Shown: piece by piece, positions 16,800 to 51,130 of the stretch
Layout: each line of letters opens with the position of its first letter
Numbering within the stretch: position 1 is the first letter of the stretch
The notes under the pieces: generated by a model
Told to the model about the DNA's origin: nothing
Database searches by the model: none
The model's input: the letters and a program-made list of their open reading frames with translations, nothing else
Translations under genes and position numbers: made by a program
NCBI RefSeq assembly: GCF_000315625.1
Contig: NW_005434642.1
Coordinates: 3,080-67,079 of the forward strand
Direction: 5' to 3'
Length of the DNA: 64,000 nt
Source of the DNA: Guillardia theta CCMP2712
Taxonomy: Eukaryota; Protista; Cryptophyta

Positions 16800-17503
16800 N
16801 NNNNNNNNNNNNNNNNNNNNNNNNNNNNNNNNNNNNNNNNNNNNNNNNNNNNNNNNNNNNNNNNNNNNNNNNNNNNNNNNNNNNNNNNNNNNNNNNNNNN
16901 NNNNNNNNNNNNNNNNNNNNNNNNNNNNNNNNNNNNNNNNNNNNNNNNNNNNNNNNNNNNNNNNNNNNNNNNNNNNNNNNNNNNNNNNNNNNNNNNNNNN
17001 NNNNNNNNNNNNNNNNNNNNNNNNNNNNNNNNNNNNNNNNNNNNNNNNNNNNNNNNNNNNNNNNNNNNNNNNNNNNNNNNNNNNNNNNNNNNNNNNNNNN
17101 NNNNNNNNNNNNNNNNNNNNNNNNNNNNNNNNNNNNNNNNNNNNNNNNNNNNNNNNNNNNNNNNNNNNNNNNNNNNNNNNNNNNNNNNNNNNNNNNNNNN
17201 NNNNNNNNNNNNNNNNNNNNNNNNNNNNNNNNNNNNNNNNNNNNNNNNNNNNNNNNNNNNNNNNNNNNNNNNNNNNNNNNNNNNNNNNNNNNNNNNNNNN
17301 NNNNNNNNNNNNNNNNNNNNNNNNNNNNNNNNNNNNNNNNNNNNNNNNNNNNNNNNNNNNNNNNNNNNNNNNNNNNNNNNNNNNNNNNNNNNNNNNNNNN
17401 NNNNNNNNNNNNNNNNNNNNNNNNNNNNNNNNNNNNNNNNNNNNNNNNNNNNNNNNNNNNNNNNNNNNNNNNNNNNNNNNNNNNNNNNNNNNNNNNNNNN
17501 NNN
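16800..17503. other. Assembly gap (N run)
   Basis: N bases flanked by (GGAG)n on the left and C-rich repeat on the right. Confidence 1.
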
Positions 17504-17547
17504 CCCTCCCCTCCCTTCTCCTGCCCCCCTCATTCTCCTCCTCCTCA

Positions 17548-20500
17548 CCTTTCGGCCCTCGTCTCGTCTGATCTCTCGGAGAGCTTCGAGGGCCCCTTGA
17601 TCTCCTCCTCTCATGCCCGCTCTTCGCCTGCATGTACGCTTGCTTCGCTCGCTGCAGGTAGGCGGCCTGTCCTAAACATTATCCTCTTCGTTTTCGTCTC
17701 CTCCTCCTTGTCGTCTCCACCACCACCTCCTCCTCGTCGTCGTCTCCTCCTCCTCCTCCTCGTCTCTTCTTCCTCCTCTGCCCTCCTCTCTCCTCTCCAT
17801 TCCTTCTTCACCCCGTCACTTGCTCCTCCTTCCCCCTCCTCCTTTCCTCAGCTCTTACGTCGCTCTCCTCGTCCGATTGGTCATCTTGGTGCATGGAAGG
17901 AACTCTGTTGGCCTGGTACGTTCCTTGCTGCTCCCTGGGAGAACTCTGCAATCGTCGTCAGCAAACAAGTATCCTCCTCCCTGCTGCTGCTGCTGCTGCT
18001 GCTGCTACTGATTCTTGTGCTTCTTCTTCTTCTTCTTCTCCCTCTCTTTCTCCCTCTCTTTCTCCCTCTCCTCCCCTTCCTATCTCAACATCACCACAGC
18101 CCTCACATCGTAGTGAAGTGACGCCTCCTCCATGGACGCTTGTGGGCGGCCAGCGAAGTCACGGAGGGTGTAGGTGGTGCCTTCGGAAGGAGAGAAGGAG
18201 GCAGACTGAGGAGGTTTCCCTCCGCTCCCGCTCGATCGCACGGAGAACTGCTTGGCCGGCAGCCGACGAGGAGACTGAGGACGAGGCTGTGACTTGGCAT
18301 CCTGTCGAGAGACAGACTTTCCTGCAATCGAAGTCAGGGAGGAGAGGGGAGGACGAGGAGAGCAAGAGAAACAAGAGAGGAAGGCGTAAGGGAAGGCGAG
18401 GAGGAGAAGAGGCGAGGAGGAGAAGAGGCGAGGAGGAGAAGAAGCGAGGAGGAGAAGAGGCGAGGAGGAGGAGGAGGAGGAGGCGGAGGAGGAGGAAGAG
18501 GAGGAGGCGGAGGAGGAGGAGGAGGAGGAGGAGGAGGAGGAGGAGGAGGAGCATACTTATGCGATCTTTCAGCGTCGACTTCAAGTCCATCTCAGACCCC
18601 TCAGTCTCTTCTTCGTAATCTCCCACCATCTTCGACGCTCTAAGTTTGTGACCATCTGACTCGAGCGACTGTACCAAGATCAACAGGACAACAAACCTCC
18701 TCCTCCTCTCTCATTCCTTCCTCTTGATTTCTTCTCCCTCAATCCCTCCCTCTGACTTCCTCCTTCTGCTTGCCTCTCTCTGTCCTCCTCTTCCTCCCTC
18801 CCCGCTCCTCCCTTCCCCACTGCTGTCCTCTCGCTATTTCTCCCTTCCTCCCTGCATCCATCGCGCTCCTCCATCTTCATCTCTCCTCCACTTCGTCCCC
18901 CTCCTTCCCCCTCGCAATCCTCAGTATCATCTCACCGATACTCTCTCCAAAGCTTCGTCCTTGTTCTTGTTTGTGACAACCTCCTTGCTGAATTTCGCAA
19001 ACTCCTCCTCATCCACTCCTGACTCTATCAGCTTTTTGTCGAAGTACATCTTGAAGTAGAGAAGGGCGAAACCATAACCTAGTCGATTCATCATCATCAT
19101 CATCATCATCATCATCGTCGTCGTCGTCGTCGTCGTCGTCGCCATCATCATCATTGCAGAACAACAACTCACAAGATTTTGCAATGACATCTAGGATGCA
19201 ATGAAAGACCTGAAAGGTCGCGGCATGTTACTCATATGCGGTTACAGAAAAAGAGATCACATGGTTCAAGTCACTGCCGATCAAGTTTGCTGCTCTGTCC
19301 GACAGGATCCAGAGGACAGGGAAGAAGATCCAGATGCCTCGAGGAAAGTCAGCCGAGGACTCGTCAATGAAGAGTCATGTACCGAAATAGCAAAAGCAGG
19401 CTGTCTTCAAGTATCTTTCATAAAGCTCCATCAGTCCCCTCTCTTCTCCCCTCCCATCAATCCTCCCTGTTCCTCTCCATCTCTTCCGATCTGCCCTTCC
19501 CTCATTTTTTTCAGGGAAGCGCCATCACCTTCGCCCTGCATCCCTCCCCTCTCTTCCTTCTCTTCCCTTCCTCTCTTCATCTCACCCTCACCTGATACTT
19601 CTCTTGGCGTTGTTGTCTCGTGCGCAGAAGGTGTAGAAATCAAGTCTCTCCCTCACAATCGACAGGATGAAGACGTAGGTGAAGATGAAGAGGCAGAGGC
19701 CCATGGCGAACCACGCGTAGGAGGCAGGAGGTGGAGCCAGGAATGAAGCTACTGCATGCACCTGGCAAGCACTCCAGGATTACTCCCCGACTTTTTTCTC
19801 TGTTCTCTCTCTTCTCTTCTCTTCTCTTCTCTTCTCTTCTCTCCGTTCTCTGCACTGCTCTGCCCTCCCCTCCTCCCCCTTTGTCCCCTCTGCTCTGCTT
19901 TGCTCTCTGCTCTGCTCTCCTCCCCTTTCCCCTCCCAACGCATTACCAGGCACGTCAACACCAGCAGGGCACTGGTGACCTTGTATGGAGCATCGAGATT
20001 CCACATGAGGTCAAGTGTGAGGATAGGACAGCTGCAGATCAAGAACGTTAGCAAGTGACACAGGAAAGGCTTGACAGCATGGATGGATGGATGTAGAAAA
20101 TGGATGGAAGGATGGATGAAGGGAGGGGGGAAGGAGGGAGGATAGGGAGGACTGAGAGCAAAGCGAGGATTACGTCATGCAGTAGTCAACGTATCTCAGC
20201 GTTGTGAAGATCACGAAGCCATCGTTGTTCGATTGAGATTGAATGATCTTTGCAAAGTACGAAACAGCGCACCTGAAGTTTCAAATCAGCATGGAAGAGT
20301 CGAAAACAGTTTTCTCCAACCATAAGTTGATGAACACCCCCAGCATGTTCTGTTCACGATAACCATTGTAATACTTCTCCTGCCCGCTAAAGCCCCAAGA
20401 AACAAGTCAGAAACATGATCGTCAGAAACACAATCACCCCCCCTCTGCTCCTGCTGCATCTACCTTGGTCCCTTGTAGCGCAGAGCTTGAGTGATAAGAC

Positions 20501-20618
20501 AGATAAAAGCTGATTCAAGTGAAAGGAATGAAATCTGCATTCACAGCAATCAAGCAACAAGACGCACTCCCAAGTCACTTACCCAGTTTGATGCGATCAC
20601 TGCGCTCGAAGAAACCAT
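17548..20618 (-). CDS. Bacteriorhodopsin-like cation channelrhodopsin (cryptophyte BCCR, DTD motif) with long cytoplasmic tail running into the gap
   Basis: Exons 20618-20583, 20534-20464, 20386-20321, 20272-20174, 20031-19947, 19761-19592, 19414-19383, 19337-19261, 19209-19173 and 19078-18936 splice in frame with GT-AG. TM3 is LRYVDYCMTCPILTLDL; TM7 is FHCILDVIAKSCYGF with the retinal-binding Lys. Confidence 0.95.
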
Positions 20619-21264
20619 CTCGATCGTGCAGACAAGACAAGTATTTACACAAGACCAAACTGATACGCCAAGTGTTATCCCATCGGTTCACGATTTCTCC
20701 TCTCAAAAGGAAACTTGTTGCTCCACCAACTTATTCAACATGATGTATTCAAGGAGCCAAGTACGATGCATTTTGATGTCCACCTCAAGAGGAAAATCCA
20801 TTCTTTGTAGCACACATGACTTGATAGCTCAATCCATGAGTCTATCGTGAGTGAATTCTCTCTTGCTTGATTCTTCCTTGCGCTCGTACTTCTCGATTTC
20901 CTCACGCCCTCGCTCTCTCGCTTTTTGTATCTACATACCCAGAGTTTCACTTCCTTATTATCATCAAGAACCTAATTGTCTTGGTTCTTCTGCAAACCTA
21001 TCATCCATGCATTGCAAGCCTCTTCTCTATCCCTTAACCTTCTTCTCTATCCCTTAACCTATCCTTTCCTCTCGAGAATTCCTCCTTCTTCACAGAAGCT
21101 TCGCTAACCCTTCTCTGTAGACCAGTCGACTGCAGTGGTACCAGCCACACCTAACCTCAACATTCCTCCTTTTCCTTCTGCTTCTGCTTCTGCTTCTGCT
21201 TCTGCTCCTGCTCCTGCTTCTGCTTCTGCTCCGGCTGCTCCTTCTCCTGCTCCTGCTGCTAATG

Positions 21265-50039: not shown

Positions 50040-51130
50040 GGTGGTGGTGGTGGTGGTGGTGGTGGTGGTGGTGTGGTGGTGGTGGTGGTGGTGGTGGTGG
50101 TGGTGGTGGTGGTGGTGGTGGTGGTGATGCGTTTATTCATGATATGGGTGATGGAGGTGATGGAGATGATGCTGATGATGGCTGTATCATGAGCAGATGT
50201 GCGAGAGTATCAGAGCTGTTCTGCTTCACCATGACTACCGTGAGGACCTTGAAGGTGAGGAGATTGAGAGGAGAAAGAAGCCTGTCCCATGCTGATGATG
50301 ACGAAGACAACTTCTCCATGAGGGACTTGGCCGACTGGATGGTGGACAAAGCACATTGGGCGCGAGGGCTGAGGGTGTGGGAGGAGGTGGAAACATCTCG
50401 CCAACTAGCGAGAGCTTCCAAGGGATACATGGTAGGACAGGAGAAGATGGGAGGATAGAGGAATAAAACTCGACCCCCTATATGTTTGGAATGTGTGCCC
50501 CACTAGCATCCATATCCCCTCTACAAATTTCGTCGACCACCTATTCCCTGCTTGCCGCAGGATTGCTGCATAATTCTATTTTCCCGCCCTTCCCTACCCG
50601 GGTGATAATTTCGACGCCTACTGGTATCTCATCCATGTTATTCTTCCACTCTATCACAAGGACATGCATAGCTTCCACGAGTTGTTCACGATGTCTCTTA
50701 TGTTTGTCACTCCAAACGACCACTCTGTGGAGTTACCTTGTGCTCTTTTTGCGACCAGTCTAGCTCTGTGTGGGTAGGCGTTGCCAGGGTACACGTTAGC
50801 TGATGTCTCATTCTGTAATCTCTGCTNNNNNNNNNNNNNNNNNNNNNNNNNNNNNNNNNNNNNNNNNNNNNNNNNNNNNNNNNNNNNNNNNNNNNNNNNN
50901 NNNNNNNNNNNNNNNNNNNNNNNNNNCCCTCCCTCCCTCCCTCCCTCCCTCCCTCCCCTCCCTCCCCTCCCTCCCTCCTTCACTGCATTATCTTCTCTCG
51001 TTACTTCGATTCTCAACTCACCAGCGAGCTAGTGGGAAGAACTTGCAGGAGCGCAACGAGCAGACATGCTGAAGAGGGCCCAGGAGGAGGGACAAGAAAA
51101 TCTTGTTTGCAGGAGTGAAGTCTTCCTGTA
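48694..51130 (+). CDS. 2OG-Fe(II) dioxygenase-fold protein, probably plastid-targeted (3' exons uncertain, span gap)
   Basis: TVNRNAQFVPHKDSG..IVALGDFEGGELMVE..FDGWKE|LHWTRPFQGERFSLVWY = HxD...H...RxS; N-terminus MAAMMAAMMAAGVSNG|FIMV. Confidence 0.75.
50827..50926. other. Assembly gap (100 N)
   Basis: N run. Confidence 1.

Follow-up and report, generated by a model that had tools for sequence, protein, structure and literature searches.

A truncated gene model in Guillardia theta and a probable third member of the GtCCR1/GtCCR2 channelrhodopsin subfamily

Does the gene Gt_107989 of the cryptophyte Guillardia theta encode a complete retinal-binding rhodopsin, and is that rhodopsin distinct from the cation channels already characterised in this species? 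The question is raised by a stretch of 64,000 nucleotides of the G. theta CCMP2712 genome (contig NW_005434642.1, positions 3,080 to 67,079 of the forward strand; hereafter the window), in which a sequence-only reading had recognised an intron-fragmented cation channelrhodopsin and for which the public annotation holds a protein of 176 amino acids (aa). Our analysis indicated that positions 20618-17504 of the minus strand are a near-complete nuclear gene, with its last codons missing, and that GtCCR1 and GtCCR2 have in it a third, old paralogue within their subfamily of the bacteriorhodopsin-like cation channelrhodopsins (BCCRs). The 176-aa public model is an annotation error.

Gene structure and the truncated public model

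To assemble exons 1-10, every GT or GC donor and every AG acceptor close to where the open reading frame (ORF) fragments end was listed for each of the nine gaps. A single in-frame, stop-free GT-AG solution was obtained at nine of nine junctions (20618-18936), with introns of 45-185 bases, and the spliced product was identical, letter for letter, to the peptide that the sequence-only reading had composed from ten phase-consistent exons. That reading was also right in seeing fragments only in the ORF track, as the minus strand between 20618 and 18927 contains nothing but short open pieces. However, what it described as a low-complexity tail proved to be four further exons conserved with an orthologue from Hanusia phi, and the lower bound that it placed at 17548 has to be moved to 17504 or lower, where the frame remains open into a run of N. 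A tblastn comparison of the H. phi orthologue (P0024) with the window recovered all ten exons and the four additional ones downstream, and the four introns joining exons 10-14 were all GT-AG. The resulting gene is split into 14 short exons. Its product, which has at least 464 aa and seven hydrophobic stretches, combines a microbial rhodopsin of seven helices (aa 1 to ~240) with a conserved cytoplasmic domain of ~220 aa at the C-terminus.

P0024 corresponds to UniRef A0A7S0EDV8, a 456-aa protein from an H. phi MMETSP transcript, and was found by a search seeded with exon 6. Over 273 aa, the spliced model of the seven-transmembrane (7TM) domain was 95% identical to it and the junctions were all free of gaps, and the H. 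phi transcript was collinear with 13 of 13 junctions, gaplessly at those within the 7TM domain. Identity of the 7TM domains was 96.4%, compared with 94.4% for the pair of GtCCR2 and HpCCR; R84, E19 and H121 were the same in both proteins and the C-terminal domains were collinear, although the orthologue belongs to another species and bears only the database name 'uncharacterized protein'. In a Nei-Gojobori comparison of the gene with its H. phi counterpart (coding sequence of locus L001), with synonymous divergence (dS) above 1 and therefore saturated, the ratio of nonsynonymous to synonymous divergence (dN/dS) was 0.017 for the 7TM domain and 0.20 for the C-terminal domain, and the strongest constraint in the gene (0.008) was found in exons 7-10, which the public model omits. 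In addition, the genes of GtCCR1 and GtCCR2, whose proteins other workers have expressed, are interrupted at the same places by the introns after aa 35/36, 58, 176, 187, 225 and 272. The splice junctions rest on this orthology and on the conserved intron positions. Thus, on the basis of the agreement with the annotation over exons 1-6, the collinearity with H. phi, the conserved introns and the purifying selection, we concluded that the full-length reading is real.

We also considered whether P0024 is the published HpCCR and rejected this identity, as the HpCCR row in the supplement of PMC7175095 matches P0021, the orthologue of GtCCR2. HpCCR is the only H. phi protein named in that paper, and P0024 is absent among the 19 BCCRs listed there. 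H. phi has at least two paralogues in the GtCCR1/GtCCR2 subfamily, namely P0021 (the published HpCCR, MN585295) and P0024.

The RefSeq protein GUITHDRAFT_107989 (P0056) is identical to aa 1-176 of the spliced model. Its frame continues across the intron-6 donor, where it meets a stop (AGG TGA), and the protein finishes behind the fifth transmembrane helix (TM5); for this reason it lacks TM6, TM7 and the Schiff-base lysine; the intron read through, after aa 176, is among those conserved in GtCCR1 and GtCCR2. The same truncation can be followed into the literature. The primers published for Gt_107989 (XM_005832876.1; Konno 2020, PMC7714340) map inside the window, the forward primer on 20618-20600, spanning the start codon, and the reverse primer on 19608-19591, where it takes in the last bases of exon 6 and one base of the intron that follows. 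In the alignment of that study, the Gt_107989 row ends after TM5. Because the public model stops after helix 5, the gene entered published analysis without its retinal-binding lysine.

According to the same paper, clade D, the cation-channel clade, holds two proteins classed as rhodopsins without lysine ('Rh-noK'), and among the rows with a BCCR TM3 motif in the parts of its alignment examined, only Gt_107989 and Gt_135937 lack the TM7 lysine. The clade-D pair is most likely these two truncated models. The Rh-noK class denotes an otherwise complete protein with no Lys at the position of bacteriorhodopsin (BR) K216, and Gt_107989 falls outside it, with its lysine encoded in exon 9. Gt_135937, which lies outside the window, is represented in the S1 dataset of PMC7714340 by a BCCR-like row whose TM3 motif is KYFDYLITCPLLT. 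This row breaks off behind TM6 and may likewise reflect a truncated gene model instead of a lysine-less protein. Truncated gene models account for one or, more probably, both of the G. theta clade-D 'rhodopsins without lysine'.

All exons lie on the minus strand. Exon 1 (20583-20618) encodes aa 1-12, with the start codon at 20618-20616, and its product shares the N-terminus MV.SSAVI..NW with GtCCR1, GtCCR2 and the H. phi orthologue. TM1, including the E19 codon at 20516-20514, is encoded by exon 2 (20464-20534; aa 13-36), and the start of TM2 by exon 3 (20321-20386; aa 36-58). Exon 4 (20174-20272; aa 58-91) covers the end of TM2, the following loop and the first half of TM3, with R84 at 20196-20194, D87 at 20187-20185 and Y88. 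The T91 codon is split between 20175 and 20174 in exon 4 and 20031 in exon 5 (19947-20031; aa 91-119), which contains the remainder of TM3 and TM4, including C92, P93 and D98 (20012-20010). Exon 6 (19592-19761; aa 120-176) supplies the end of TM4 with H121, and TM5, and is followed by the GT donor at 19591. The next three exons are absent in the public model: exon 7 (19383-19414; aa 176-187), collinear with the H. phi transcript, begins TM6; exon 8 (19261-19337; aa 187-212) continues TM6 with F192-P193; and exon 9 (19173-19209; aa 213-225) forms the core of TM7, with D219 at 19191-19189 and the Schiff-base lysine K223 at 19179-19177. Exon 10 (18936-19078; aa 225-272) completes TM7 and adds a conserved juxtamembrane helix (YFDKKLIESG...) before the donor GTGAGA at 18935.

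The C-terminal domain is encoded by exon 11 (18557-18668; aa 273-310), with 80% identity to the H. phi orthologue in the tblastn comparison, exon 12 (18107-18321; aa 310-381), in which 7 aa are inserted compared with the H. phi protein, exon 13 (17859-17945; aa 382-410) and exon 14 (17504-17666; aa 411 to at least 464). An assembly gap of 704 N (16800-17503) covers the stop codon and the 3' untranslated region or 3' end of the gene; the stop codon is placed outside the assembled sequence because no stop was seen in exon 14, whose frame is still open at the gap edge. The H. phi protein ends ~10 aa past the last aligned motif. A second gap of 100 N occurs at 50827-50926 of the window. Simple sequence is common in the introns: intron 11 contains a (GAG/GAA)n trinucleotide repeat of ~170 bases (18385-18552), intron 9 a (CAT)n(CGT)n repeat of ~60 bases (19090-19150), and most of the others are filled by CT-rich simple sequence. 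These intronic repeats are responsible for spurious long low-complexity ORFs on both strands.

Family placement and the residue at the R82 position

In a maximum-likelihood tree of 25 BCCR-type proteins (MAFFT and IQ-TREE), the window protein and P0024 were joined with a support of 100/99, and the pair fell inside the cryptophyte GtCCR1/GtCCR2 subfamily with 97/98, as a lineage of its own separate from GtCCR1 plus the pair of GtCCR2 and HpCCR. The resemblance to GtCCR1 and GtCCR2 proposed by the sequence-only reading was thus borne out, and the nearest solved structure was that of GtCCR2. Over aa 1-250 the protein was 70% identical to GtCCR2 and 66% to GtCCR1, and a search with the spliced 7TM model matched GtCCR2 at 67% (E 6e-127). 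This match and the gapless one to P0024 are well outside what chance would produce.

For the Pfam and structure searches, exon pieces or the 95%-identical P0024 served as proxies for the spliced protein. The exon 4 piece matched GtCCR2 (PDB 8YEJ) with an E-value of 6e-9, a Pro of GtCCR2 standing opposite the Arg, and the exon 6 piece matched the same structure with 1.6e-20; the 7TM domain of the orthologue matched GtCCR2 (E 4.9e-131), ChRmine (2e-49) and GtCCR4 (1e-48) in the PDB. Its matches to HcKCR1 and HcKCR2 were distant (E 1e-19 to 3e-22), which argues against close kinship with the kalium channelrhodopsins (KCRs); HcKCR1 has Trp at the equivalent of BR R82, where the window protein has Arg. 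For the Pfam domain PF01036, P0024 scored 63 bits (cut-off 24.6) and the match spanned positions 32-220 of the 224-position profile, whereas in the truncated public model it spanned positions 31-152 only. The gene product is therefore a type 1 rhodopsin by its PF01036 domain and by the retinal-binding K223, which shares an alignment column with the Schiff-base Lys of every relative, and it belongs to the BCCRs by its DTD motif (D87, T91, D98) and by its placement in the cryptophyte BCCR clade together with characterised channels.

A six-frame PF01036 scan of the genome did not report the window locus, which is uninformative because the exons are too short. Two pairs of equal-score rhodopsin-domain matches were observed elsewhere in the genome (G000), at C38:270419-270805 and 327426-327812 and at C26:310696-311082 and 311846-312232; one pair is inverted and ~1 kb apart. 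These pairs are recent duplications of other rhodopsin genes. The best match of the exon-6 search, P0001, is a protein of 4885 aa that was matched in 18 separate places, at 31% identity. It appears to be a repetitive or polytopic protein that picks up the TM4-TM5 piece repeatedly, and it is probably unrelated.

All the residues named by the sequence-only reading were present, that is, R84 at the position of BR R82, D87, T91 and D98 of the DTD motif, C92-P93 of the TCP motif, D219 and K223 of the DxxxK motif, and the Glu of TM1 (E19) and His of TM4 (H121). R84, D87, Y88, T91, C92, P93, D98, F192, D219 and K223 were located by a gapless 7TM alignment to GtCCR2 (GUITHDRAFT_99928, PDB 8YEJ/8YEK), a protein of the same species, subfamily and 7TM length that likewise carries a long cytoplasmic tail. 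Asp87, Asp98, Phe192, Asp219 and Lys223 of GtCCR2, which figure in the published accounts of its structure and photocycle, are the same residues with the same numbers in the window protein (for the GtCCR2 numbering Asp219/Lys223, see bioRxiv 10.64898/2026.10.19.760008); T91 and C92 are also identical, and six intron positions are common to the two genes. In contrast, GtCCR2 has Pro84, a Ser in TM1 and an Ile in TM4 where the window protein has R84, E19 and H121, and the window gene has four more introns. GtCCR1 shares the DTD motif and the same intron positions; however, it has Pro at the R82 position and Ala opposite C89, and it groups with GtCCR2. ChRmine (PDB 7W9W, 7SFK) and GtCCR4 (PDB 8YEL) resemble the window protein in the DTD, TCP and DxxxK motifs of the BCCR family but belong to other subfamilies, with ~35% identity and longer loops, and have Arg and Lys, respectively, at the R82 position. 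R82, D85, T89, D96, D212 and K216 of Halobacterium salinarum bacteriorhodopsin all have counterparts in the window protein, although this match is distant (E ~1e-5 with the orthologue), Tyr, Cys and Phe replace W86, T90 and Y185, and bacteriorhodopsin is a pump whereas those close relatives of the window gene that have been tested are all channels.

The sequence-only reading was right that GtCCRs have Pro or Lys at the R82 position: GtCCR1 and GtCCR2 have Pro and GtCCR3, GtCCR4 and GtCCR5 have Lys, whereas Gt_107989 and its H. phi orthologue have Arg. Arg occupies this position in four of the five lineages of the GtCCR1/GtCCR2 subfamily (P0053, P0004, P0009, P0027) and also in the ChRmine group, and the residues described as unusual are the non-Arg ones (PMC7175095). 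Because Arg is common elsewhere among BCCRs, we proposed that Arg84 is probably an ancestral state that was retained. Among the aligned relatives, E19 was restricted to the pair of Gt_107989 and the H. phi orthologue, and H121 was also found in the unnamed relatives P0053, P0004 and P0002.

Rival readings and the evidence on expression

Might the gene simply be one of the five known channels? The numbering of D87 and D98, which is the same as in GtCCR1 and GtCCR2, suggests as much, and an identity with GtCCR1 was considered on this ground; it was rejected, as GtCCR1 is Gt_120390 on another contig. The gene identifiers of the characterised channels all differ from Gt_107989, namely GtCCR1 (Gt_120390, LC591948), GtCCR2 (Gt_99928, XM_005841372), GtCCR3 (Gt_162755, XM_005833981), GtCCR4 (Gt_164280, MF039475) and GtCCR5 (Gt_164579, XM_005827826) (PMC10172181, PMC7714340), and none of these genes is located on the contig of the window. 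When the genome (assembly of 87.1 Mb, 669 contigs) was searched in six frames with the H. phi orthologue, three loci reached ~60% identity or more: the window (C32), GtCCR2 (C3) and GtCCR1 (C178). With the identities to GtCCR2 and GtCCR1 reaching only the values given above, far from the full identity to a known channel that the sequence-only reading had named as the end of any novelty, we consider this explanation to be practically eliminated. No functional data for Gt_107989 were found in the literature searched, which excludes the subscription-only founding papers. A number of observations do count against a full-length, expressed channel. The stop codon falls in the assembly gap; RNA reads mapping to 18556-20700 amounted to 3 from one run, with no joints; and two further runs, guessed to be RNA, yielded only unspliced, DNA-like contigs at the locus. 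No G. theta transcript-derived protein for Gt_107989 was present among a collection of 5.8 billion proteins, the exact exon 6/7 junction pattern had no match in metagenome contigs, where this genome may be unrepresented, and the gene is outside the 25 that were measurable by quantitative reverse-transcription PCR (Konno 2020, PMC7714340). A search for related loci with P0024 in the metagenome contigs, with the same proviso on representation, found none. This near-absence of RNA support, together with the RefSeq model that stops after TM5, would fit a G. theta gene that is silent or yields only a lysine-less TM1-5 product by retention of intron 6, the full-length form being confined to Hanusia. 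However, the frame stays open through each of exons 7-14 and their splice sites are canonical, the functional GtCCR1 and GtCCR2 genes have the same conserved intron after aa 176, the G. theta substitutions relative to H. phi are few and conservative, and the TM6-TM7 exons have the lowest dN/dS of the gene (at saturated dS), a constraint that a dead region would not retain. We therefore regard a silent or truncated gene as improbable.

It is also unlikely, though marginally less so, that the gene encodes an intact rhodopsin of the BCCR lineage that is no channel but pumps protons outward or has a sensory or regulatory function. The full pump set R-D-T-D-D-K (R84, D87, T91, D98, D219, K223) is present with its Arg, so that the sequence by itself also allows pumping, and this too speaks against the channel assignment, as does the fact that no photocurrent was reported for Gt_107989 or its H. 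phi orthologue in the literature searched. Several synthesised BCCR homologues gave no currents in HEK cells (PMC7175095), and the long conserved C-terminal domain could serve in signalling. Against this stand the retinal pocket, which is BCCR-like and unlike that of BR, sharing with GtCCR2 the Tyr at BR W86, F192 and the TCP motif; the strongly supported nesting of the protein among the passive conductors GtCCR1, GtCCR2 and HpCCR; and the example of ChRmine, which is a channel despite the same Arg. An intact BCCR gene whose product is predicted to be a cation channel is thus the reading that we prefer.

Proposed mechanism and significance

In the relatives, the Schiff-base proton is passed to D87, the channel opens upon deprotonation of D98, and there is no net pumping (PMC7175095, PMC13078637). 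Because the key residues and their numbering match those of GtCCR2, a GtCCR2-type mechanism is the best supported for Gt_107989. All-trans retinal would form a protonated Schiff base with K223, for which D87 and D219 would serve as counterions; upon illumination the retinal would isomerise and the Schiff-base proton pass to D87. Deprotonation of D98, at the BR D96 position, toward the cytoplasm would then open a passive path for cations, mainly Na+ and H+, and D87 would return its proton to the Schiff base, such that no net proton would be pumped. By analogy with bacteriorhodopsin and ChRmine, R84 should be positioned beneath the counterion pair, and it would be expected to tune the pKa of D87, the colour and the kinetics. 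The channel activity, ion selectivity and role of R84 in Gt_107989 are thus predictions drawn from homology, and at 70% identity to GtCCR2 a trimeric assembly like those of GtCCR2 and ChRmine may also be expected. We would entertain, as a tentative idea with the balance tipped against it, that Gt_107989, the only G. theta BCCR with the complete bacteriorhodopsin set on a GtCCR2-type scaffold, behaves unlike GtCCR1-5. If so, the protein might combine pumping with channel conduction, have a counterion pKa that is shifted and with it another colour, or differ in gating kinetics or selectivity, and the Arg, Pro and Lys paralogues would form a natural three-way mutant series on the transition from pump to channel.

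ChRmine, GtCCR4 and other BCCRs are in demand as tools for optogenetics, and the GtCCR1/GtCCR2 subfamily is where the unusual Asp96-dependent gating mechanism was worked out. Gt_107989 is a third, strongly conserved G. theta member of this subfamily and a candidate for optogenetics, which, because its public model lacks TM6-7, has apparently never been expressed by anyone. The corrected record alters the counts of candidate channels and of Rh-noK genes in G. theta, and the occurrence of Arg, Pro or Lys at the R82 position among its paralogues would provide a natural test of the role of this residue in a channel built on a pump scaffold.

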